From Parasitella parasitica NRRL 2501 (Eukaryota > Fungi > Mucoromycota), in assembly GCA_025201805.1 (NCBI GenBank), contig MU619284.1, forward strand, positions 22,484 through 86,483: a stretch of DNA of 64,000 nt. The letters run 5' to 3'. Below are positions 1 through 31,445 of this stretch, piece by piece (position 1 is the first letter of the stretch; each line of letters begins with the position of its first letter). The notes beneath the pieces were generated by a model, which did not search any database, had not been told where the DNA came from, and saw only the letters and a program-made list of their open reading frames with translations. The position numbers and the translations under genes were made by a program.

Positions 1-1310
1 AGGAAAGAAAATGCACCATTAGCACCAACTGATACTACATTTCCAGGGCTAACTGTATAAGTCCCAGGTCCTTTAAAGCCTCCAATGCTAAAGCCTCCAC
101 CAAGGTTGAGAGTAGGCAAGTTCAGAGTAGGAAGAGTAATGCTAGGCCATGTGAATGTAGGGCCTGAGATGCTAGGCACAGTAGTTTCACTAGTTTGTGT
201 TTGCGAACCACCTTGAAGCCAAGTGATTTCTCCACTGGCGCCAACAGAGACGACATTTCCTGGGCTGATTGTATAGGTTCCAGCGCCAGCAAAGTTGGGC
301 AAAACAAATCCACCAGGGAGCGTAACTGTGGGAAGAGAGAGAGTGGGTAATGCAACGTTTCCAGCAGTATTTCCGTTTCCACCCGTGATGAATGAAAATC
401 CACCATTAGCACCAATAGAGACGACGTTTCCTGGACTAACAGTATAAATTCCAGGCCCTGAATAGCCTCCAATTGAGAAGCCACCACCCAAGTTGAGCGG
501 TGGTAGGCTGATGGTTGGGAGGATGAAGCCGGATTGGGTGTTTCCAGGAGGACCGCCCAGCAAAAAGCTGTATGAACCATCATTGCTCACAGAGACGACA
601 TTTCCCGGACTTAATGTATAAGTACCAGGGCCAGTAAATTCAGGGATATTGAAGGGAAACGAGAAGGAACCACCTGTGTTCGTAGCGCCACCATCACCGC
701 CTGTGTTTGAAGGAGGACCACCCATCAAGAAGCTGTATGAACCATCATTGCTTACAGAGACGACATTTCCCGGACTCAGGGTGTATGTACCGGGGCCAGT
801 GAATCCAGGAATTCTAAATGGAAAGGAGAAGGTGTTGCCAGTTGTTATAGGGTCTGTGCCTCCTGTAGGAGCATGGCCCTGAAGGAAGGTGTATGACCCA
901 TCATTGCTTACGGAGACTACATTTCCAGGACTCAATGTGTATACGCCGGGACCAGTAAAGTCAGGAATGTTGAATGGGAACGAAAAGTGCATTGTATCTT
1001 CAGTTTGCTGACCTGGATTTCCTCCATTGGTAGAAGGGGGTCCGCCGCTAGTGAAGAAATAGCTTCCGTCTGCATTTACTTGGACAACATTGCCGGGACT
1101 AAGTGTATATGATCCAGGTCCAGCAAAGTTAGGGATAAGGAAGGGGAACGAGAACGCAGTACTGCCGCTAACGCTTCCACTAGGTGGTCCACCCAAGGTA
1201 AATCCATAAGAGCCATCAGCCTTCACAGTAATTACCGAGCCAATGCCAAGAGTATAAGTTCCAGCGCCATGGAATCCGGGAATAGAAAAGGGGAATTTAA
1301 AGCCTCCATT
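1..1310 (-). repeat. Coding tandem repeats, consensus F.FPF.IP.F.GPG.YTLSPGNVVSV.NDGSY.F
   Basis: Eight recognisable copies. The DNA repeats are visible, e.g. gctgtatgaaccatcattgct at ~568 and ~732, with a close variant at ~890. Confidence 0.9.
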
Positions 1311-3641
1311 ATACGTAATTGTGGGATTAGTATAGGTGTACGTGATTATTGGCTTGGCTGTGGTGGACGGTCCGGTAGACTGATATATCGTAGTGGGCTG
1401 CGTGATAGTAATAAAGCTAGTTTGTGTTGCTGTCTTTGTTGTAACAAATGTTGCAGTCTCGGTGAAGGTAGGCCCAGGAGTTTGGACTGTTGTAGTTGTT
1501 GTTACCTGCCTGATGGCATACTGTACAATAGTTGTGGCAGGCAGCGTAACCCTTGATGTAACGGTTCCAGAAGGAAGAGTGATAGTAACCGCTGGTAAAG
1601 GCGCCTGAGTTACGGTTACAGTTCCTGGAGGCAGAGTGATTGTATTTGCAGGTAAAGTTACTGGACTTGGGGTAACTGTAACTGTATTTGGTGGCAGAGT
1701 GACAATACTAGGAGGCAATGTAACTGTTCCAGATGGAAGAGTAATGGTTTTTCCTGGAAGTGTGATGGAAGAGACTCTTGTTTCTGTAATGGTGCTAACT
1801 GGTAAGGTCAGAATGCTTGCCGGTAGAGTAACAGTAGACGCAGGTAACGTTAATGGCAGAGTTACAGTATTAGGAGGTAGCGTCACTGGCACAGTAACGG
1901 TATCTGGCTTCAATGTGACAGTACTGGGCGCTAAGGTTACAGTATTAGGAGGCAGGGTGACAATACTAGCGGGCAGGGTAACTGTTCCAGAAGGCAGCGT
2001 AATTGTCGTACCAGGTAAAGTGATAGAGGACAGTTTTATTTGAGTGATTGTGCTAGCAGGCAATGTAACAATACTTGGAGCGAGCGTAATTTGTTTTGTC
2101 ACTGTGTTTCCAGGCAATGTAATAGTATTAGGTGGAAGTGTAATGACATCTGCTGGCAGAGTAACAATCTGAACAGACGTAAGAACACTAGTATCGGTGA
2201 CGGTGAGCAATTGGACTTCTGTCAAGGTATTATTGATGACAAGTGTGTTGTTGACAGTGGCTGTAAATAGTTCGACATTTGTAACAGTATCTGTAACGGT
2301 AGTAGTAGTGGATTTTGTATCGGTGCTAAGTTGGACATCTACAATAGTGCTTGTTACAGTAACGTATTCAGTAGCAGTCAATTGCTCCACATCAGTTTCA
2401 GTGAGAGTTGTAACCTCCAAATCGGTGATTGTGCTGGTTCCCACCATAGTTACAGTTGATGTGGAAGGAGCGCCATCTTCAGTGACAGTGACAGGAACGC
2501 CATCGATATACTCTGTAATAGTTGAGGGCACGCCTTCCAATATAATAGTAGAGATGATAGCATCCAAGGTTACCGTAGATGCAGCATTTTCTACAGTGAT
2601 TGTAGTTTCAACCCCGGAGAGAGTTAATGTTGTAACAAGACCATTGACAGTAGTTGTAGACAGTACAGTAACCGTTCTGTCACCACCGTTACCACCTTTT
2701 CCACCTTTATGGCCTTTTTTACCTCCATAGCCACCAGGATAAGGATAGCCATTGTTGGGATAGCCATTTTTAGGATAACCATATGGATAGCCGCCATTAC
2801 CATAACCAGGGCCGCCAGGATAAACACCGCCAGGATAACCCCCATTAGGGCCTTGGGGATATTCGCGATGGGGGCCTTGAAACCCGCCATCATACGAAGG
2901 GGGATAACCTGGTCTTGGATGATTCACGACAGGAGGGTATACAGGCTGATTTCCAGGATATGGAGCATGATCACCACGAGGGCGGGCATTGTGAACAGGA
3001 GCCTTAGAAGCTACAGCAGTTTGATAAGCATATTGCGGCACAGATTGAGAGTAGAGAGAGTTGTGAGGCACTGTTGATTGATGAAGTTGGCATAGGACAG
3101 GCCTATCGCCAGGACAAATATTCTCAATGCCACCGCCTGGACCAATACTGCCTACAAAAATCGAAAGACAATCTTGGCTATTCTTTACAGGATTTCCGTT
3201 CTCACTGTAATCCCAAGATCTGTATATAAAATGCGTTAGATATGGTAATAAAAAGTTACGATTAAATAAAAAATAAAAAAAAACATACCCAATCCATGCT
3301 CTTTCATTAGGGCCAGCACATGTTAAGACAAGGTCAGCAGCAAGGAGAAAGTTTTGATTGCTAATGTCAGCGAGGGAACCGCCCAAAGCGGTACAGGCAG
3401 TGACAGCACCAGCATAAGGATACTTGTCTTTCGAAATGAAGAAACCACCTGTGCCTGGAGCGTCGCATCTTGTAATCAAGCCGCTTCCTCTAGGAAAACC
3501 GCCATTCTTCTTATAATGGCTGTAGGACTGATGTTGGACATTCTCATCACTGTACTGTTCAAATGCAGCCGCATTGCTATTAGCTAATGCTATGAGAAAA
3601 GCAATCCCTAGAAGCTTATCACGACGTTTTGCTATCGTCAT
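1..3641 (-). CDS. Large secreted adhesin-like protein: signal peptide, C-type lectin-like domain, Gly/Pro/Tyr-rich segment, Thr/Val-rich TLP-repeat stalk, at least 8 C-terminal ~45-50 aa repeats (3' end outside window)
   Basis: Hand translation from ATG 3641 (MTIAKRRDKLLGIAFLIALANSNAAA). One GT-AG intron at 3288-3220. The frame stays open to position 1, so it is absent from the ORF track. Lectin-like pattern: YAGAVTACTALGGSLADI...AWIGSW...DCLSI...CPGDRPVLC. Confidence 0.85.
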   Translation of the reverse strand, partial: MTIAKRRDKLLGIAFLIALANSNAAAFEQYSDENVQHQSYSHYKKNGGFPRGSGLITRCDAPGTGGFFISKDKYPYAGAVTACTALGGSLADISNQNFLLAADLVLTCAGPNERAWIGYVFFYFLFNRNFLLPYLTHFIYRSWDYSENGNPVKNSQDCLSIFVGSIGPGGGIENICPGDRPVLCQLHQSTVPHNSLYSQSVPQYAYQTAVASKAPVHNARPRGDHAPYPGNQPVYPPVVNHPRPGYPPSYDGGFQGPHREYPQGPNGGYPGGVYPGGPGYGNGGYPYGYPKNGYPNNGYPYPGGYGGKKGHKGGKGGNGGDRTVTVLSTTTVNGLVTTLTLSGVETTITVENAASTVTLDAIISTIILEGVPSTITEYIDGVPVTVTEDGAPSTSTVTMVGTSTITDLEVTTLTETDVEQLTATEYVTVTSTIVDVQLSTDTKSTTTTVTDTVTNVELFTATVNNTLVINNTLTEVQLLTVTDTSVLTSVQIVTLPADVITLPPNTITLPGNTVTKQITLAPSIVTLPASTITQIKLSSITLPGTTITLPSGTVTLPASIVTLPPNTVTLAPSTVTLKPDTVTVPVTLPPNTVTLPLTLPASTVTLPASILTLPVSTITETRVSSITLPGKTITLPSGTVTLPPSIVTLPPNTVTVTPSPVTLPANTITLPPGTVTVTQAPLPAVTITLPSGTVTSRVTLPATTIVQYAIRQVTTTTTVQTPGPTFTETATFVTTKTATQTSFITITQPTTIYQSTGPSTTAKPIITYTYTNPTITYNGGFKFPFSIPGFHGAGTYTLGIGSVITVKADGSYGFTLGGPPSGSVSGSTAFSFPFLIPNFAGPGSYTLSPGNVVQVNADGSYFFTSGGPPSTNGGNPGQQTEDTMHFSFPFNIPDFTGPGVYTLSPGNVVSVSNDGSYTFLQGHAPTGGTDPITTGNTFSFPFRIPGFTGPGTYTLSPGNVVSVSNDGSYSFLMGGPPSNTGGDGGATNTGGSFSFPFNIPEFTGPGTYTLSPGNVVSVSNDGSYSFLLGGPPGNTQSGFILPTISLPPLNLGGGFSIGGYSGPGIYTVSPGNVVSIGANGGFSFITGGNGNTAGNVALPTLSLPTVTLPGGFVLPNFAGAGTYTISPGNVVSVGASGEITWLQGGSQTQTSETTVPSISGPTFTWPSITLPTLNLPTLNLGGGFSIGGFKGPGTYTVSPGNVVSVGANGAFSF

Positions 3642-4956
3642 GGTGTAAAAAATGCCAGAAATGATGTTGTAAAACTTTAGAAAGGGAAGAGAAGTAGGCT
3701 GGAACGAGACGGCAACGTATTATGGCTGATTCCTTATAAACACGAAAACAAGTTAAATTAAAAGTATGCTAGCGCTTAGTAGCGACAGAATAAACAAATC
3801 CAAGTTGCACTTTCATCGTCTGGTATGTTTTGACAGATGTTAATTTAACTTTTTGAAGTATATGTCTTGATATAGTAATCCAGAGAATAAGGCAGCGTAG
3901 ACTTGGCTATGTGTACAATGTTTGCTTTTTTAGGATTTTTCCGTCTCATTTTTTCCTGACTAAAAGTGGCGATTGAGAGGCTCAAGATATATCTGTGTGA
4001 AGATTGAATTATTTTTTATGCACTCCAGTGCATAAATTGCGTTTGTTGTAAATAAAGCGTTCTTTATATGGCTTAACGAAANNNNNNNNNNNNNNNNNNN
4101 NAAAAAAAAAAAAAAAAAAAAAAAAAAAATAGAGCAGCTCGACATGTTCAATTGGCAACTCTGGAAATGTAGAATTTAAATAATGATTGCACTAGATGCA
4201 GAATTCAGACGTGGGATGTTCGATGTAAATTTCGTCAAGAGTCGGATATGCATTTGAACATGTCCTATAAAGGCTATTTCCGTATACGTTTGTCAGTGAA
4301 CGCTCACGCAAAAAAAAATAAAAAAAATAAAAATAAAAATAAAAAGAGCTACATGGACTCAACCAGTTCCGATTTTCAGACCTCATTTGTGTATTTTGAA
4401 GCAGTATTGAAAGCAATTTGTGGAATTTACACACTGTAGTACGGTGGTGCTACCTCAATCGTAGTTGCAGGCTTCATGACGGTCCTTTTACCACCACCAG
4501 TCGATTTCAGGAACAAAGAAATCCTGATTGGCAATCTCATGATGATCGACCATGAGCCTGAAGCATAATCGCAAAAAAAAGAAAAAAAAAAAAAATAGAA
4601 GAAAAGAGAATGCGAAAGAGAAAAAGAAACGCAGGGAAAATAGGCTATTTTGATACCACTGTTCACATTGCACAAGCCATGGTCTTTGCTATACGGTATA
4701 ACACATGAAGACTATTGTGCTACATGTGATTTATTCACTTCCTTATCTCGTAATTTGGGGCTTCCTCGTTTTTTTTTTTGTTTTTTAGTTTTTGTTTTGT
4801 TTTGTTTTGTTTTTTCTTCTTTCTACAAACTAACAAACCTATGCCAACCTTATAACTTGCTAATCTACGTACATCCACTATATCCATTCCTTTATTTAAA
4901 CACTTGTTACCGTCCTTAAGAAAGCGATTCACTCTTATCCATTCCTTCACCAAAGA

Positions 4957-7900
4957 ATGTTGTCAGCATCTACATACTCTTCTTCGCCAGTATCTGCCTC
5001 GAGCGCTTTTCCCGCTAGCCCTGGCTTGTCAACACCGTCTTCTCAGTATTCGACCGAGTCTGGTATAAAAAGGGGTGGAAATCCACTTACTGAGCTGATT
5101 GACACAGAACAAGCGTACATGGAAACGCTGAAAATGATCGACTCTGTAAGTAAGCCATGGACCAGCACCTGATGCAGTGATGATTAACAAATTATGAATA
5201 GCAAATTGCGCCAATTTGGATGAAGCAAATGACATCTGCGGCTCCAGACTTTTCTGAGCTTTTAAAGTACATTCACAACATTTTAAAAGCAAACAAGAGG
5301 TTTTGTATGAAGCTGACCAGAATCGCAGCAAATTCCCAGACTATCAGCGAACTAGGAGACGCTTTAATGCAATGGGTAAATGATTTGGAGGTGCCATACG
5401 CCAACTATTCTCGAAGCTTCATACCAAATTTGAATCAACGAGACGATATCGTTGGAAATCCATCCATCCAAGCCTTGCTGCGAAATCTGTCGGCCAGTCT
5501 ATCTTATGAAATCAACCTCGAAGCGCTGTTCAACGCGCCAATCCAGCAATTGAAATACTACAAAGGGCTGTACAGCAGACTGCTGGAAGGAACTGACGCT
5601 GGACGGGCAGACCACAAGCTTCTAACGAGCGCCAACAAACGGATCGACATGATTATGGCCATGTTGAAAGGCAGTAACAATGTCCATGTAAACCACAAGG
5701 AGTTCAGCTTACCACACATTCAGACAAACTTTACCGTAAATCAAGATTTGACGACATTTGAACACCAGGTCGATTGCTCCAGAACTGCAGATCTGTTTAA
5801 TGGGACACAAATAGTATGAATAGCAATCAACTATTAATAGATGCACGTGAAGTATTAACTTTCATTTTTAGCGCTACCAATTGCGCATCTCGAATCCAGG
5901 CGCTGAGCTTGTTATGAAGGACAGCTTTATCATGCTGTCTGGCCACAATGGGCCGTCTATTCGAGTGTGTCTGGCCCTGACTACCGATGTACTGGTCATT
6001 GCACGAGAACTGTCTCCGAGCCAGCTCCTGTTGATGTATCCCGCCATCCCGATAGGCGACATTACAGTCAGGGCAGATTCTTTGGACAGAGAAATTGTGG
6101 GCGAATACATGATTCGGTTTTCTGTATTGGGTAAGAAACATTTGATTATGCGTGCAGATTCCAAAGAAATCAGAAACACGTGGATTGGCGTTGAATCGAA
6201 TGCTTCCAAATCTGTGATCCTGACCCCTAGGACTATGAGCGTAGCTGCTCAAAAGAAAATGCTATCCGCTGCAAATAGCTATGGAGGAACCAGCCTGCCT
6301 CCCATGCCTACTATCGACCGCGCCAATAAAGCCATTGATTCGACAAAGGCCGCAAGCATCCGCAACACAGACATATTCACTTACTATTCAGAGAATGGCG
6401 GTGTCTCACCATTGGAGAGCTCCGACGATGACGACCATGGCAACAGCAAAAATCAGGGTAAATCCAGGGACACCATAATGGACATTTACGACAACCATTT
6501 ATATGATTATGGAGACGACAATGATAACACTAGCAAATTTCCTGCGCCTTCAGTGCCAGCTGTGAGCAAAGAATCCATGTCACAGACTGTCAAGATTCCG
6601 CAACAAGCACAGATGCAAAATATGCCAACGCCACCAAATAAAGACAGACCAAACGTGAAAGACATTCTTCCTCCTGTTCCTCCTAAAAACCAGCAGCCTG
6701 TTAATGAACCACTTAAAGAGTCCTGCCATGTTCAGATGACATACATTCAGCCGCCTACTGCCCAGATGTCAAGCATGTCAATATCACCCCCTTTTCCACA
6801 ATCAAATGAGTTAAATAGCTCCAACTCACCCCCTGCTGCTGTGGCCTCTCTTTCTTCTTCTTCTTCTTTTTCTTCTTCTTCCTCGTCGCCTTCTTCTCCT
6901 AAAATGAACTATAGCAACAGGATCAACCCTTTGCCATCGCCCTCTAGCATCAGCAGTAAGCCCTCCTCGCCAAGAGCTGTCCAAGTCCAGAAGGTCGTTA
7001 TACCACAGACAATGCAAGCAGTAACTCAAAAGACGGACGATTATCTCTCATCGTCTTCCAACAAAACACTGCAGCCCGAAACTAGTCGATTTCAGCCTGT
7101 GGCCAATAATGCCATGTCACGTCCCGCAATGCAGCCAAGAAGCGATTCTGCTCCTCTACAGCAACAGCAGCAGCAGCTACCCAGAATATCATCCATGAGA
7201 GGACAACAGCAGCAAAGACCCCCAATGATGCAGAGTAATAGCTACACTACCCAATCACATTTGCAGAATCAGTCCCAAATGACAATGAATGTTCAACCAC
7301 AGCAACAAAGACCATTACCGTCCTCGCCCCAAAGCCCGTACGGCTACAATGGCAATGCCATGAGTACAGCACCTTCTCAGCAGCAACAGTATAGGCCTGC
7401 ATATGGTGGAGGAGGGGCATCGTCATCTATTGCATCGCACTCTCCGAATGGAAGAAGGGCTCCAGGAGGACAGCCACTATCTCCTGGAGTACAGCAGCCC
7501 CCTGGAAGGTTCAACTCCCCATCACCAAGCCAACGTCATATGAACTCTATCGACGATTTTGGTCCACCCCCTCATAACCCTGGCAACGATGTTCGTCAGA
7601 TCCTTTACAGCAGCAGCCAGTGCGATGTATTTCATTGGAACCATCAATCGTGGTATGCGGCTGAGGGGCAATGCTTGCTGCAAGTGAGATTAACGCATAA
7701 CCATCGCACATGTGTTGCGGTGCAGTTACAAAATACGGGCCAGCTCTACTTGAACGCTTGGATCCTACCAAGTACAGTCATAAGGCAGCCATCACCAACC
7801 GATGTGAGCATTTCACTGTACATGGGCACGAGGAAGGAAAATTATCTCGTCCATTTCGCACACCCCCAAGACGCCACCGTGTTCTTTAACATTTTGAATA

Positions 7901-9277: not shown

Positions 9278-9439
9278 ACCTAACCTACTATCATTACTCT
9301 TTACACACACACTGCTCATTTACAAAGAGCACATGCCCCAGGGAAATATGCAAACGAACAATATGTAGATCAATCCTATATTTTTTATTTATGATATATG
9401 CTTTCAAATTATGCAGTTTTTATTAGATATGTGTAAATT

Positions 9440-10970
9440 TTATAAGGCCCCCATGCTAAATTACAACAAATGTCAATGATACGCCCTTTTATATATGCCT
9501 AAAGATAAAAACTTACCGTGAATAAAACATCTTTAATCTCAACTGTACATTTTCCTGGTACAGGTCGTCAAATGACCGATTTTGATAGAGCCCCAATTGA
9601 ATGTTTCTCACAAAGCTATAGAAATTGCACACGGCAACAAGTCTATCGCGACAGTTACTATCAATCAGTAACCAGTCGTCCTCTTCAACAAGCCGGAATC
9701 GATAAAATGCAGGGTTTACTTTGTGTTTGATGTTTGATTTTCTTCCACAGGACGCACACTCCAAACACTCGCTTTGCTGTGCAACATGGTACGTGTTCAC
9801 GGACCATCTTTCCCAAAGCGGACGATAATAAGCAGACGACGTTGAGTTCATTGGCGACGGGATGCGTCTAGCCGTGTCCAATGTAACGCGTTCGATAAAA
9901 CAAGGCTTCTGAAGCATATGCTCCATCATTAGCTTGATACACATGCGCGATTCTGAATTGCCAAATCCAAGACAAGGCTCTATATCCTCCTTTTCGCACT
10001 GCATGATATACTCACTTTTCTGAGCCAGCGGCACAGTAGCAAGTGGGTGAGTGTAGTAAAAAAACGCATTGTGATGGCGATTCTCTATAGATGAATTGGC
10101 GCCTTGTGTTCTAGCTGCGTCCTCTTCCTCACTCTCACTCTCAGTATCGAAATAAGATGACGACTGGCTGCTTCGACTGCTGGTGCTACCGCTATTGCTG
10201 TAGAGAACAAGATAAGATTGGAACATCTTGACATTTGATAGCTTGGAGTCATACAGCGATGTCATCTGTTGCGTTATAGTGTTGGTGGGGGTAGTAAGTG
10301 CTGATATTGCCAAGTTTGCGCTGGAAACTGTATTGCGTCTTTTGCTGGGTTTTATCTTGCTTTGGCCATCAGCGTCTGTCGTGCTACTGTCGATTGCCAT
10401 TGTCAGTCTTTGACCCTTGGAAGCCAAAATATTTGTACTATTGCGATGGTTTGCCGTGTATACAACATTTAGCGGCAACATTGTGTTAGCAGCGGCTCCA
10501 ATGTGGGGTGACGGTAAAAGGTTCTCCATGCGAGTTTTCAATTCTCGCAACTGGTTTTGTTCATTGTCTAGTTGATCTTCGGTCATTTCTAGCTTCTTCT
10601 GCAGCTGCATCCTCCTTCTCTTTTCATTCGCCACCATATTATTAGCTTCTTCAAACAAGTGAGCGCTGAGGTCTTCAAGTTCTCGGTCGGCCTGCTCTTT
10701 CTGCTTTTGTACTTCGGCCATTGTACTCAAACTCGCCGTGTACTTGGCGCTGAGCGTCTGAAAATCCAGGCTTTGATTTCTCATCTTTACTTGACAAGCA
10801 TGTAGCTCCTTTCTAAGCTGGTTTATTTCATCAGCCTGCAATGTGATTTTGTGCTGAAGCTCGTTTGTGTAAAGACAGGCGCTGATTTTCCTGTTACACA
10901 GTTGACATTGATGAGGATGTTGAGGCTGAATTACATTATGGCATTCACATTCCTTTTCGTTGCTGGCTAC

Positions 10971-12487: not shown

Positions 12488-13599
12488 GCGAGTAGTTGAT
12501 ATTTCAATAGGAAAGAAGAAATAAAGTATCGTTTTATTGCCATTTTCGAATGTTTATAATGCAAAACCCAAGCGGCAGCCTTATTTATCCGATACCGTCC
12601 ATGCTCTTTGAAACCAAAACTTGATCAACAGAATATCCCTTTGATGCTAAACAAACATGTCATGGAACATAAATTCTGCCTCTGGTTGCTTTTCGACAGA
12701 CTCATGATTTCCCTCTCCTCCATAAAGCTGACATTAACCACACAAACAAACACACAATAACAAAGTATAAATAGGCACTGCTACTGTGCTTCCACTCTCA
12801 ATTTACCGACTTTTTGAAAACACTGTCCGCTTTTTTTTTTTTGAGAAAGATTGGGGCTAATTTGCCAAACTTTTGAATATAGATTGACCACCTTTCACAT
12901 ATAGGTTGAACAACTTCCGATCAAAAATCAAAATGGGTTTCAAGTTCTTTATTGAAAAATTCAAGAAACATCTGCTGAATGCTGGAAAAAATTGACAACA
13001 CAAAAATCGGAGAGCAAAAGAATACACCCCCCGTTATTCAGCACATAGTAAGAGGCCTTCAAAAAATCACAACCCAACATTACTATCGCTGTAAAGGACT
13101 ACCGCAATGAAGTGGCATTCAGTCAGAACCACCTTACTGAAGCCAAAAGCAGTATATAAATACACCTTCATTACAATCCACAGCGAAAAGCTACGGATTC
13201 CCATAGCGCCATGTTGGGAGTAGGCGTTTGCATCCTTTTTGCTAGTTGATCAAAAGCCTAGTCAAAGCAATATCTACAGTACAACATGTTAGAAAGAATG
13301 CAATAGTTTTTCTTTTTTGTAATGTGCTACTAACCTTCAGTATGCTACATGAATCCAAAGAGCAAAAGAATACTTTGTTTATATGTCCCCCAACCACCCA
13401 GGTAAGAGGTGTTTGTAATTGAGAAACTGCTCAGGCGAAAACTTGGGTTGTTTATTAATATGAAATAAAAGAATTAATAAAGCAAATGCTATATATTGCA
13501 TTCGATCTTTTGATCATTATTGCAAGCATTGTGAAAGAAAAAAAGATATCTCAGATCACTAATGACATCTATAATTGGCATGATGGTGGATGGGATACA

Positions 13600-14870
13600 C
13601 ATGGCTATTAGGGAAGATCAATGACAATATGGATGCGCTCGCATCGTGCATAGAAAAAGATTGTAGCAGTGGAGGGACAAACAGAGGGAGCAAATCACAA
13701 CGGTTCACCACAGAGCAGGAAAGACATTGGACGCCTGTTAGGCTGGGGACAGGGTGGGACACTCATGAAGATGGCGGCGAGAGGTGTGATCGGTGTTGCA
13801 GATGCAAGGTCGAGGCTTACCGGGAAGCCAACCCATACGGTAGCGAACAAGTCGGCTACGGCAGGGTCTACTGGCAGGCACATACATGACAGGGTCAATG
13901 CCAATGGTAGGAAGACAGGCACGGATCAAGACCTTGTCAGTCTTCTCCAGGAACTCGGAATGCCAGTCTTGTTGTTGCCCGAAAAACCATTTTTTCAATA
14001 AGCCTTTATTTGCCACGGGAACTTTGTCCAAAGCGCGAGTTGCCATCTTTTGGCTTTTTCAACTGGTGCAAAGAAGAATTCGAGAGCGAAGCAGACAGCA
14101 GAGAGATCAGGCCATCCTCAAGCAGGAACTGGGAGCGCAAAAAATACTGCGACACGAGTATCGCAACTCGTTGCTTCATCAACAGCAGATTTGTCAGATG
14201 CCGGAACACCCCAGCGGTATCCAAGCTTCAAAGAATGAGATTCAGCAAGCTCAAGCATATGTTTAACCCCACGAGCTGATCCGATAATAGCAACATCATC
14301 AGCATACAATAAAGAGTTGATGGGAATGCTATTAGGGGACCCAGCAGGGAGAAGTGACTAAAGTGAAGACGGAGCAGAAGCAGCAGAGGTGGACAAAATC
14401 CTCGTGGTTGTGGCAGTGGCAGCTAGGCGCAACATCGCAGGCAACGAATTGATGAAAATACTGAAGAGATGTGGACTCAAACTGGATCCTTGAAGCAATC
14501 CGGTGCCAAGGGAAAGTTCATCGGATACGCAGTTTTGGTTCAGAACCGAGATCGACACATCATCAAACAGATTGGAGAGCAAAGAAGCAACTGGTATTGG
14601 AGCATTGGCCGATAGCATGGACTGCCAGATCACACGCCTATCGACAACGTCGTACGCACTTTTAATGTCCAAAAAACATACCGTGGGCCAGTGGTAATGC
14701 TGACGTTGGTAGTCTTTCATCAAATTCTGCAAGCTAAGGGCACTGTCAAGGGTACTTCTTGAAGTTCGGAATCCATTTTGAGCTACGTCAATTGCAGGAG
14801 AAGTGTCAAGAACAAAGGGAGCAAGGCACAATTCAAAGAGTTTGAGAAACTGCTTACGTATCACACTGTA
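13600..14870 (-). mobile_element. Decayed non-LTR retrotransposon (LINE) reverse transcriptase fragment
   Basis: Motifs QNGFR, FLDIKSAYD, GLLQGSSLSPHLF, YADD and C-terminal RMGWLPG.PRPC.C....SRRHL.EC. In-frame stop at 14358, internal deletion after LGYRW, and frameshifts. Confidence 0.9.
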
Positions 14871-14986
14871 ACTGTATAATGTTGTAGGGCAGTGATGAGG
14901 TGACGCACACAAACTCCATTCAGCATTTTAAAATTCTAATTACTCAAGACTGACCTTCTCTTCTTTGCAAAAATATATATTACCTA

Positions 14987-16684
14987 TGGATTTGAATGCT
15001 GCGGAACACATCTAGAAACACTATTCCAGTTTTAGTGGTCTTCGATTTTCTTCGATTTTCTCGTGTTTTAAATTTACAAAGTTTACAAGATGCCAAAAGA
15101 GAATTTAACAATGCAATTCAGTCGATTACAAACCGTTCTCTAAAAGCCAAAAAAAAGGGACAAGGATTTGATTCTATGGGCAAGGCGCGTGAAAAAGCAA
15201 AATTTGAATGTAGGAATGAAGCTTTCAATAGTTTGAATATGATTTCAAGTATTTTTTTTCTTTTTTTTTTTTTTTAGAAGGTTTTAATGATCAAGCTATC
15301 AAAATTCACTTTTACTCGATCCACCGTCGCGCTCTATTGTATTGTAAGAAACTTCTTGATGTTTCAGACGAGGTAGAATTCACCAATGAACAACTTACTG
15401 AAAATCAAAGAATTCATGAAGAGGCTACTGAGGAAAACCTCGAAAAGACCGATGATGGTATCACTGAAACTGACGCACCAAACGGGCAAATTGACGCTGA
15501 ACAAACCCAAAATCTTTTGAATGAAGGCGATTTCAAGATGAATTTTGAAAGGAGCTTCAACAAAATGAGAGCTGAAGAAAAATGGTACCTTTCAAATGGT
15601 AAATGTGTGGAGGACGAACTTTTCGCCTTTGGCATGCAGTGCAATGAAGAGCACCCTTGTCACTCGTTCATTGTCGATCCGACTGATATTAATTATAAAA
15701 CATATCGAGTATTCAATGATGATGAATTGAAGGAAATCAGGTCGTTTAAAGAGAAGGAGCTGCCCACTATGCCCACCATACTACGTGATTATTTAAATGA
15801 GTACAATCTCTCCACCGCAAGTGCTCTACGTCAAAAAATATTCACACAGGAGCCATTAGATGAACTATATTCTCAAGGTATGAATTGGATAAGATTTACA
15901 ATCTATTCTTTTGTAAGAGAATTCGAATGCGAAAGTTTTAAGCGTTCACACAGTGAAGAATGGTACAAAGCACACGTGTGGCATTTATTAGACACAGTAT
16001 TCAACAATGCAAGTGATATAGAGGTACTAAGGTAAGCTACATTAAATTTCTTTTATTCAGTTTTACAAAGGATTGGCTCCGCTTGTTTTAGAGGTGAGAA
16101 AGCAAGTTTTTCATCTAGCAAGAGAAAGAACAAGGACAGGTTTATTGGGGCCATTGACCCGCTAGTATCGATATGATATTTCGCAAGTTAGTATGCAACC
16201 ACGACGATATCCTCGAATTTGGAGCAACAGAAACTGGCAAAGATTACGATGGTGACGATGCAACGAAAAACTCATTGAAGGATGTATCAAACTGCCAAAA
16301 TGTCTAAAAGACATGCTCGACAATCTGGCAATGAACTTTCGAGCAATAGGTGACATTGAAGTTGTTGATTTCATACACTCGGGATTACAATCTTGCCTTC
16401 TCAGAGCAACAAGAATAACAAGATCCCGTTCCGTTCATATTAGCAGCGACATATCCAACTTCGGTACCACTGTATTACCATCCATGCACTCTGCTTGGCT
16501 CGCCAGAGAAATTTTCACGAGAGTCTTACTTTCGTTACCTACCTCACCCGCTGCTGCCAGGAATGCTGATTCAAGTTGGCTGGAAACATATTGGACGCCT
16601 TCTGAACCATCTGCCATGCCCGAGACTAGCACTAGCTTTGGCACTGTTAATAGGAGCAACAAAAAAATCAAAAACATGCATTAA
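14987..16684 (+). pseudogene. Frameshifted gene for a putative PD-(D/E)xK (restriction-endonuclease-like) domain protein
   Basis: Spliced reading gives HSEEWYKAHVW, RGEKASFSSSKRKN, IDMIFR, EFGATETGK and KLPKCLKDML. Frameshifts near 16165 and 16270. Intron at about 16032-16090. Confidence 0.6.
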
Positions 16685-17101
16685 ATAGTTGTAGATGTAA
16701 GTGAAACAATACCTATGTGAATAACAAAATGGAAAAGTAAAGTATATAGTGCTCTCTCATAAATAAATAACAAAGTAAAAGAATAAAATAAAAGATCCTG
16801 AATGCTTTTCTACTAATATGCATTTTCGTGATTTCTAAAAGAGTTATTTATTTTTACGTCTTCATAAGAGGCACTCGTTTTTGTGGATAATACCTTGTTA
16901 CTATAAGAAATCGAATTTTTGGTCAACCTGCATGTGGAAGCTAGTAAATCTTATTCAAAAAGTTAGGCAAATCAGCTTCAGACATCTCGGCAAATTAGCC
17001 TAAAAAAAGTGGGCAGTGTTTTCAAAAAAAATTGGTAAATTCCGGGTGGAAGCACAGTATCCTTTTTGCCTGTCTTCTTTTTGGCATTATTCGAGCAAAT
17101 C

Positions 17102-27715: not shown

Positions 27716-28715
27716 AATCTTGAATTTCTTTTTTTTAAAAAAAAAAAAAAGTAGTCGATCGAAAAAGACTGAGGAAAGGGAAATAACTGTGCTTCACTCT
27801 CTTGAAAATAAATTGACCGCAACTTACAAATAATTTGGTAAAATTTTAAAGATTCTTTGTTCAATAATTTAGGGAATACGTTGGATAAAGTCTTTAATTG
27901 AGTAACAGTGAGGAATTTGATCGATAACTCATGTAAATAAAAATAGAAAGCTTGATAAAATCAAACATTTTGTCTTGACAAAAAGAAAATGACATATATA
28001 ATAATCACTGGAAAGCCTAGTATTGGTCTTTGATGGAATAATATTACGTCCATCGCGTTATATTTTCTGCACATATCCTCAATAATATTGAGGTTATTTT
28101 GTATCAATTCTATTTAACGAACCATTGCATGGAGACAACAGCGATCCAGTACAAATATCTCTTCGCCCTGAATAATATCTACAAGTTTGGTTGAAAATAT
28201 ACATCCTCTGTAGCAAGTATTTCTCCAACCAATAACCATAATCTACTCAAACTGATATTCTCTGTCAGCCTATTTTTACTGATAACTTATGCTCCATCTA
28301 ACCATTCAATCAGTAGTAGCGACAGACTGTGTTTACCAAAGGCAGAGACGTATTCCTATTGAAGCTTGAGTCATCAGCCATATATACATTAAAACTACAA
28401 GTATAATTCGATCGATATTGAAATTTGCCCCTGGATGTAATAGGCATTAAGCTCAACATTTGCCAGATGATGAATGTCAATAAAGTTAGAATCCTTTTTC
28501 GTTACTATTATCCGTTGTATTCGAGTTAAGACATGCGATCCACCCTATCATACTCTGTCGTTCTCTTCTCGATCATCGCTCTTTATCATCCAAAAGCAAC
28601 CATTGAAAAGCAGGCTTTGGTGGAAGCCGACAGTCACTATGAAAATCTTTTTCAATCAACATGGAGACAACAAAGGTCTTTTTCGTTACCACCAGAACAT
28701 TAAAAGAATACCAAC

Positions 28716-30500: not shown

Positions 30501-31445
30501 CTGTACAAAAAAGATAGGGCTAAATTGTTGAATTGTATGCGCTTGGCAGTAGTGGGGTTTGGGTCGAAGCAGGGGAAAGTTACTCCAAACAAAAGGCAAC
30601 CAAGACCAGTAACAAAGTATAATTTACCAGACGTCTTTATCTCTTTGAAAGCCTCCGACTGGCTGAACGAAGAAAAAGTTGCGTCAAAGTTTGTAGCCTC
30701 CGTTTTTGGGAATATAGGCTCCAGTGCTTCTACATATAGTTTGGCCATTTTATTTGTAAGAAGTGGGCAATTTATTTTCGAAAAGCTGGGCAAATTAAGT
30801 TCAAACATTCGGGCAAAATGTTTTCACACAATTGGCGGACTTTTCAAACATTCGGTAAAAAATTGAGAGTGGAAGCACAGTATCATAACTAAAAAAAATA
30901 TTTTTAGAAATAAAAATATTTTATTTCCTTCGCAAAAAAGTCGAAAACCTTCCTAATTCAGAAGATAATAACTGAATATTTCCCTACATTTGAGACAGTA
31001 GCTAATATGACTTTCACTCTCATGTTTGGAAAACATTTCCCAACGGATGCGATACCAATTTAGTTTCGGCGGCATGAATTTTTCTTCCTTTACATTTACA
31101 GCAACGCAATGATCACTTTGTAAAAACGACAGCAATCTAGACGGCACAATGTTTTTCTTTATTGCTCATGAATAATATGTGTCAGCAGTAAGCCATCAGT
31201 ATGCCAATTTAGTAAGTGTAGTGAACATGTCATTCATCAAACCAGCGTATATATTGAGAACAACGCTATTTAAAACTGCTTTCTTTAAATTGCACTGTTT
31301 CAAAAAGATCAACAAAAGTTGAGAAGTACGGGATAACACCAGAATGGGCTATGGAAAGAAAGAAAGAAAAAAAAGTATAAATTCAAGTCAAACTCATTAC
31401 CATTTCGACTTGTGTTTTTGATCAAACTTATCAATTAAAAGAAAA

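Follow-up and report, generated by a model that had tools for sequence, protein, structure and literature searches.

A probable non-autonomous Tc1-type element carrying a restriction endonuclease-like gene in Parasitella parasitica and other Mucorales

The window analysed here is a 64-kb stretch (C48:22484-86483) of the genome of Parasitella parasitica, a mucoralean mycoparasite, and the genome searched is the 32.8-Mb assembly of this fungus in 450 contigs. At positions 12782-17059 of the window lies a segment that starts and ends with TA, is bounded by imperfect terminal inverted repeats (TIRs), and holds a damaged three-exon gene, a fragment of a long interspersed nuclear element (LINE) and a short non-coding module close to its left end. 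The gene is referred to as NucA; NucA and NucB are names coined here for two cargo gene families. The parts of the segment, in window coordinates, are as follows.

12782..12783, no strand: left TA, presumed target-site duplication; precedes a CTGTGCTTCC-type terminus, as at 26/26 ends inspected
12784..12925, plus strand: left TIR of ~140 nucleotides (nt), which aligns to the reverse complement of the right end
12997..13373, plus strand: subterminal non-coding module, core ~13018-13245; 77-83% identity to the copies in Rhizopus stolonifer
13429..14843, minus strand: LINE fragment in the variable middle region, from a dispersed repeat family with many copies at 75-97%
14987..16684, plus strand: NucA pseudogene; exon 1 ~14987-15214, exon 2 15278-16031, exon 3 16092-16684
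16915..17057, minus strand: right TIR, from an inverted-repeat search and MAFFT alignment to the left end
17058..17059, no strand: right TA, presumed target-site duplication; the same TA pattern is seen at 13 elements

Inverted arms of 58 nt are detected at 12782-12839 and 17002-17059 by an inverted-repeat search, with 74% identity overall and 93% in an inner 27-nt core. Alignment with MAFFT extends the similarity of the two ends to ~140 nt with insertions and deletions; the initial 14 nt are identical (TACTGTGCTTCCAC), and the ends as a whole are only ~75% alike. Both start with TA, and the sequences outside them are unrelated to each other. Allowing up to three mismatches, the window contains the 16-nt terminus five times, against 0.54 occurrences expected, and genome-wide the left end matches at least 41 related ends, many of which form convergent pairs 0.27 to 5.3 kb apart. 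Thirteen elements from three species were inspected (the window element and 12 others), all with TA on both sides and unrelated flanks, and at 26 of 26 ends the TA is followed by a conserved terminus of the CTGTGCTTCCAC type, with occasional substitutions. The left TIR also aligns to Tc1 ends of Parasitella, Cokeromyces, R. stolonifer, Mucor mucedo and Thamnidium, and the best genomic relatives of the right TIR, its own left partner aside, are the ends of an element on contig C146. We note that a third end of this TIR family lies elsewhere in the window, at 30751-30882 on the minus strand, and that its terminal 16 nt are identical to those of the left end at 12782; a BLAST search using 22 ends as the library (E ≤0.001) found no left partner for it near 27787.

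The gene between these ends contains the stretch D..IFR...EFGATETGK and matches an intact Parasitella paralogue, L040:4434-5636(-), with a tblastn E value of 2e-62; individual exons and smaller pieces of it were the queries, not a joined or repaired coding sequence. A TAG nonsense codon is present at 15014-15016, and relative to both orthologous copies described below there is a 10-bp insertion at ~15038, a 22-bp deletion at ~16170 directly before the conserved D, a 1-bp deletion at ~16264 and an in-frame 21-bp deletion at ~16408. The window gene is a pseudogene, with a nonsense codon, three frameshifts and an in-frame deletion, and these five lesions together with the divergence of the ends indicate that the window copy is old and dead. 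It is also non-autonomous, as no self-encoded DDE_3 transposase with a DD34E triad was found inside 12782-17059 by tblastn; the same tblastn, as used on the paralogue loci below, finds no Tc1 transposase fragment in the whole window. The LINE fragment is recognised by an RVT_1 match (E 4e-13) on a minus-strand open reading frame (ORF) at 14358-14912. The preliminary description of this DNA, made from the sequence alone, had proposed a TA-flanked element whose ends, at 12784 and 17057, show ~140 bp of imperfect inverted similarity, containing a spliced nuclease-like gene with the quoted core and a LINE fragment, and with no DDE transposase visible; all of this is borne out.

Elements that share these ends and encode a transposase are present in the same genome. 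Five short paired elements of 1.4-1.9 kb (L035-L039) have near-identical ends with a transposase gene inside, and the initial 55 nt of the window ends are 84-93% identical to theirs, with internal motifs in common. In L037, 321 residues of the reading frame match DDE_3 with an E value of 1e-29, and 34 residues separate the second D (VMDNAP) from the E (NPIE), a spacing characteristic of Tc1 (DD34E). The genome has at least 351 candidate DDE_3 transposase fragments, and the closest full-length transposases are on C296, C52 and C128. Because TA is found at both sides of all 13 elements and DD34E siblings have the same ends, the ends are those of an ordinary transposon of the Tc1 (DD34E, DDE_3) family and not of an unknown element type. 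Relatives of the sibling transposase in Parasitella and other Mucorales have already been described (PMC9977792).

The same unit is seen in two other genera. The proteins closest to the window gene are P0024 of Cokeromyces recurvatus and P0021 of R. stolonifer, and the genes for both lie inside elements with matched ends.

L056:5099-9513: Cokeromyces element, 4415 bp, with TIRs of 145 nt that are 96% matched
L057:4326-10053: R. stolonifer element, 5728 bp, with TIRs of 143 nt that are 91% matched

Window positions 12782-13374 align to L056 5099-5755 at 73.5%, and 14946-17061 align to L056 7396-9515 at 80% over 2175 nt. The R. stolonifer element has the same ends, the gene at 70.8% identity and a transposase fragment. 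Each of the two has TA on both sides and lies among flanks and neighbouring genes of its own, and in both species the DNA similarity to the window ceases at the element ends; the Parasitella orthologue of one Cokeromyces neighbour, TBCB (tubulin cofactor B), is on a different contig. Exons 2 and 3 are open in the Cokeromyces and R. stolonifer copies. What varies is the middle region, which is occupied by the LINE fragment in the window, by the transposase remnant in R. stolonifer and by 1.6 kb of unrelated DNA in Cokeromyces, so that the LINE stretch is common to neither of the other elements; the left subterminal DNA of the Cokeromyces element retains a trace of a transposase 3' end (E 0.009). 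The unit was inserted independently in three genera of Mucorales, and since it lies at unrelated TA sites in each of them the gene moves as part of the element. The recurrence of the ends, the module and the gene together likewise shows that the window ends are not two unrelated small elements.

A second region of the same Cokeromyces contig segment, L056:12431-16449, holds, on the minus strand, a Tc1 transposase gene that is nearly full-length but frameshifted, together with a truncated NucA on the plus strand and a duplication of the transposase 3' end; inverted arms of 269 nt, 97% identical, bound the whole. These may be the remains of a two-gene element.

The subterminal module, with a core of ~230 bp, is the part of the element best conserved between genera, reaching 87% between Cokeromyces and R. 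stolonifer. It occurs once in the window (12997-13373), once in Cokeromyces (L056:5378-5755), in R. stolonifer as a tandem array of 3.9 nearly identical 386-bp units (L057:4682-6169), three times on C49 (L045:5768-7012) and once in the C146 element (L031:5290-5481), and it contains a TATA-like motif. A reading of the module as an RNA was set aside: it has no Rfam match, and RNAalifold on five sequences, while reporting eight pairs with double changes, returned a covariation term of +0.68, which gives no net support.

Both ends of the C146 element match those of the window element, with the orientation flipped; it carries a related gene, NucB, in the same relative orientation, plus a C-terminal transposase fragment. 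NucB is the second cargo family and is found in two further Parasitella elements of the window's TIR family, those on C146 and C85. BLASTP gave no link between NucA and NucB (E 0.21), and comparison of profiles with hhalign identifies them as homologous with a probability of 97.9% and an E value of 4e-13.

Three Parasitella loci are noted for their structure. In the C85 element (C85:53429-59681, L032, positions 501-5753) both ends include the last ~90 codons of the transposase, pointing outwards, and the inverted repeats are therefore ~500 bp long; the 4.2 kb between them include a decayed NucB fragment. L033 (C36:84741-90963) contains two internally deleted 0.7-kb Tc1 elements, at 501-1166 and 4980-5723, in direct orientation and 3.8 kb apart; the interval has a 169-aa ORF (3724-4233) with a D...E..K-like stretch recognised by eye, and the locus looks composite. 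At L034 (C161:31290-35208) a 2.9-kb element spans positions 501-3419 and its flanks are inverted copies of each other, so the target of its insertion was a palindrome or a different inverted-repeat element.

Comparison of the copies with open exons 2 and 3 shows purifying selection on the gene. The ratio of nonsynonymous to synonymous divergence (dN/dS) is 0.25 between the Cokeromyces and R. stolonifer copies over these two exons, and 0.16-0.17 between window exon 2 and either of those copies, so the gene was constrained during divergence of the element lineages. Idle cargo would not be expected to stay intact between element lineages, and this is the chief argument that the protein matters to the element or to the host. 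Among the three species the synonymous divergence of the element is 0.53-0.76. Between Parasitella and Cokeromyces the synonymous divergence of the cargo (window exon 2 against L056) is 0.76, and that of a host control, one TBCB exon (L063 against L056:965-1342, 126 codons), is 1.40; the cargo divergence, at about half that of this one short control exon, hints at transfer of the element between genera.

The NucA family is large. An exhaustive profile search yields 1589 clusters (50% identity) at E ≤0.001, with sampled members from Mucorales and from Glomeromycotina (Rhizophagus, Funneliformis, Entrophospora, Geosiphon). One cluster includes a protein (P0189) annotated from the ascomycete Sphaerosporella brunnea, and the other named sampled members are from Mucoromycota. 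The cargo family has no sequence match in the PDB. A structure was predicted with AlphaFold2 for the intact Parasitella paralogue at L040, using an input alignment of 100 diverse sequences from the profile search, and the model has a predicted local distance difference test (pLDDT) score of 92.5 and a predicted template modelling (pTM) score of 0.91; with a shallow alignment of 20 close relatives the pLDDT was 38. Comparison of the model with VIA-align matches residues ~140-355 to the nuclease domain of BpuSI (3s1s; Z 10.3, root-mean-square deviation 3.5, 154 aligned residues) and to DrdV (7lo5; Z 10.2), with HsdR, TT1808, BbvCI, NgoMIV, EcoRI and NucC at Z 6-7.5. Eight of the ten best matches and most of the further ones are restriction enzymes or restriction endonuclease-like proteins; Foldseek of the same model against the PDB returned nothing at E ≤0.001.

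Near-invariant residues among the 100 sequences are E164, N202, G219, D223, E238, E243, K263 and D270. In the model D223 lies on strand 221-228 and E238 and E243 on strand 238-245, which are the second and third core strands, and K263 is on the following helix; each of these four is at least 90% conserved, and K245 is not conserved. The cargo family is thus predicted to have a restriction endonuclease-like alpha/beta core, and in the model the placement of D223, E238, E243 and K263 is what an active PD-(D/E)xK site would look like, which makes the protein a putative nuclease. A PD-(D/E)xK-type fold had been anticipated in the preliminary description, and the predicted structure agrees with it. 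A connection to Crinkler-type nuclease domains had also been suggested, and of this only a faint structural echo persists (template modelling score, TM, 0.47); the Crinkler header PF20147 is absent from 100 of 100 members, and from seven representatives at E values up to 10.

Two other nuclease assignments were considered and are not supported. Neither NucA nor NucB has a match to PF04754 or to the NCBIfam Rpn models, as an Rpn/YhgA (Transposase_31) protein would, and the only PF04754 matches in the genome are to a different ORF on C182 and C225, with an hhalign probability below 1% against the NucA and NucB profiles. That ORF is a 133-aa frame at 575-973 on the minus strand of L067 and L068 (C182:1-2236 and C225:1-2236), scores 24.8 bits and lies ~0.4 kb from a Tc1 transposase fragment; its coordinates and score are identical on the two contigs. 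Fanzor/TnpB, a RuvC-like nuclease with a zinc finger, does not agree with the predicted fold, which is restriction endonuclease-like and not RuvC.

The association with Tc1 elements extends to other family members. Sixteen other Parasitella loci were examined with ~4-5 kb of flank on each side, and Tc1 transposase fragments lie within 5 kb at 12 of them, a proportion with a chance probability of 1e-9 to 7e-5 if 351 to 1000 fragments are placed uniformly. No paired TIRs of the window's own family surround any of these 16 paralogues; general inverted-repeat detection shows four of them enclosed by other inverted-repeat pairs, one with TA-CAGCTG termini. In Thamnidium a family gene lies between inverted Tc1 copies, in Pilaira transposase fragments are 1-2 kb from the family gene, and in M. 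mucedo an end of the window's TIR family is 860 bp downstream of the gene. The Thamnidium elegans locus is flanked by a perfect 1167-nt inverted duplication containing Tc1 sequence (L059:5865-7031 and 9348-10514, on either side of NucA), which either arose by rearrangement very recently or is an artefact of the assembly.

We regard it as very probable that 12782-17059 is an old, dead, non-autonomous Tc1-type element (IS630/Tc1/mariner, DD34E) that carries a three-exon PD-(D/E)xK-like gene and no transposase. A sibling DD34E transposase would bind the common ends, cut at TA and move the cargo element in trans. The cargo protein would be an active nuclease, retained for helping the element to persist or spread, perhaps because it cuts DNA in such a way that repair tends to keep or copy the element, a mechanism suggested for TnpB/Fanzor; alternatively, it may be retained because it serves the host. 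Carried further, NucA and NucB would be previously unrecognised accessory nucleases encoded by eukaryotic transposons, a restriction endonuclease-fold counterpart of TnpB/Fanzor that raises element retention or spread. Cuts at empty donor or target sites could then force copying by repair, and the subterminal module could be part of the mechanism. We think this extension quite unlikely to be correct as it stands, and a real accessory role analogous to that of TnpB/Fanzor is improbable as well. As to the earlier suggestion that the nuclease-like gene family spreads inside a TIR element, its core is upheld by the unit common to three genera: homologues sit within such termini at the Cokeromyces (P0024) and R. 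stolonifer (P0021) loci and in two more Parasitella elements, and the two ends, the subterminal module and the gene come together as one unit in all three genera. The idea of an uncharacterised element type falls, the ends being of the Tc1 DD34E family.

Several observations weigh against reading the window segment as a mobile Tc1-type element with a nuclease cargo, or narrow that reading. The TA duplication and the mobility of the window copy would follow from the behaviour of its family, and no copy was found with an intact transposase and an intact cargo within one pair of ends, the closest arrangement, at L056:12431-16449, being broken. Nuclease models of Pfam and NCBIfam have no match in 100 family members or in seven representatives. 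The proximity of paralogues to Tc1 fragments could be inflated by clustering of transposable elements in element-rich islands, and gene order and orientation with respect to the transposase remnants differ from locus to locus, an outcome as compatible with repeated capture or rearrangement as with a fixed two-gene design. There is no Tc1 remnant or inverted repeat near the Rhizopus microsporus member, nor near the distant Zychaea and Geosiphon members, and the family is therefore not always transposon-borne; the Tc1 link is strong in the clades tested and not universal across the family.

Some of these points would also be expected if a host nuclease-like gene had been captured in the Pack-type manner by a Tc1-type element and travelled as passive cargo, its conservation reflecting a benefit to the host, for example in defence or fungal conflict, roles that have been put forward for the restriction endonuclease domains of Crinkler type. 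The variable arrangement of cargo and transposase remnants fits such a history, as do the distant members with no transposon context, and the sole fully open Parasitella copy seen (C188, L040) is not within a detected TIR pair; the weak structural likeness (TM 0.47) to a Mucoromycota cluster in which some members have a Crinkler domain also agrees with it. However, ordinary gene fragments captured by Pack-type elements are usually partial and decay quickly, whereas here a gene-plus-ends unit persists in three genera with the gene under purifying selection, two homologous cargo families occur in one TIR family, and the closeness to Tc1 remnants is far above uniform expectation. We consider passive carriage possible, if on balance unlikely.

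Two further explanations concern the nature of the element itself. The PD-(D/E)xK protein could itself act as transposase in a distinct and so far undescribed type of element whose likeness to Tc1 is confined to the ends: the window, Cokeromyces and C146-type cargo elements lack a DDE gene, fragments aside, and Rpn/YhgA proteins, which are bacterial and of PD-(D/E)xK type, are annotated as putative transposases. The close identity of the first 55 nt of the ends, and the internal motifs, to DD34E elements makes this very improbable, as do the trace of a transposase 3' end in the Cokeromyces element, the transposase fragment inside the R. stolonifer element, the TA flanks that are a hallmark of Tc1/mariner, and the failure of the cargo family to match Rpn models. 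Still harder to credit is a chance pairing in which remnants of two independent small Tc1 elements happen to surround a host gene and a LINE fragment, since Cokeromyces and R. stolonifer have ends, module and gene arranged in just the same way, the ends of their elements match well, and it is exactly there that the DNA similarity stops; this is despite the modest likeness of the two window ends and a comparable case at L033 with its two deleted elements.

A Tc1-type element with a restriction endonuclease-like cargo would be of interest beyond the window. Few cut-and-paste transposons retain a second nuclease besides the transposase, and the best-known case is TnpB/Fanzor, which is key to transposon persistence and is also a genome-editing tool. 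In Mucorales a putative nuclease of a different predicted fold rides repeatedly in Tc1-type elements, and this provides a concrete system for asking what a restriction enzyme-like protein does for a eukaryotic transposon. It also accounts for many 'hypothetical proteins' of Mucorales genomes, some of them from opportunistic pathogens. The window copy is a fossil, and its value lies in pointing to the family.

No paper describing Tc1 elements with NucA-type cargo was found in a full-text literature search, and comparisons are therefore with systems that share one or another feature. The best structural matches, over residues ~140-355 of the model, are the N-terminal nuclease domains of the type IIG/IIL enzymes BpuSI (3s1s) and DrdV (7lo5); in contrast to these, the cargo protein has no methyltransferase or specificity domains and is encoded by a spliced eukaryotic gene, and with sequence identity of 8-10% a common fold does not show a common function. 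Tn7 also pairs a restriction endonuclease-fold protein, TnsA, with a DDE transposase in one mobile element, and resembles the present elements in this association. TnsA is an obligatory strand-cleaving subunit, however, whereas Tc1 transposases work without such a partner, and the cargo gene is absent from copies of the TIR family that carry the transposase alone. The restriction endonuclease domains of Crinkler (CR) effectors are reported to share this fold and to have expanded in early-diverging fungi (Zhang et al. 2016, summarised in PMC5289972). NucA resembles them through a weak similarity in shape to a cluster from Mucoromycota, 17% of whose members have PF20147, as opposed to 0 of 100 scanned NucA family members, and no link at the sequence level was found.

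Among transposons, Tc1-MP1 of Mucor piriformis and its Mucorales relatives (PMC9977792) are similar in having TA flanks and TIRs with a conserved terminus, and the 1.4-1.9 kb siblings reported here, with their DD34E DDE_3 transposase gene, are like them. The cargo elements of the three genera differ in having no transposase gene, a length of 4.3-5.7 kb, and a three-exon gene plus the subterminal module. Closer in organisation are the Fanzor1-carrying Mariner elements of Bao and Jurka (2013), in which a nuclease gene lies between Mariner TIRs with TA duplications, and some of which are nuclease-only and rely on ends common to transposase-encoding relatives (PMC3627910). The likeness is in the non-transposase, nuclease-type gene between Mariner-type TIRs; Fanzor/TnpB is an RNA-guided RuvC nuclease, whereas the cargo here has a predicted restriction endonuclease-like fold, and the conserved module gave no sign of a guide RNA by Rfam matching or by net covariation support among the five sequences. 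Mariners in virus genomes provide a further parallel, encoding a transposase, a restriction endonuclease and a methyltransferase as single-copy elements, with one endonuclease being EcoRII-like (PMC3627910). These are alike in that a Mariner element encodes a restriction endonuclease-type protein, and they differ from the elements described here, which have a fungal host, no methyltransferase, an intron-bearing cargo gene and a large fungal family with no Pfam model. Nuclease cargo in Mariner elements is already known; the present case differs in its predicted nuclease fold, as compared with Fanzor, in its host, and in belonging to a family that is both large and anonymous.

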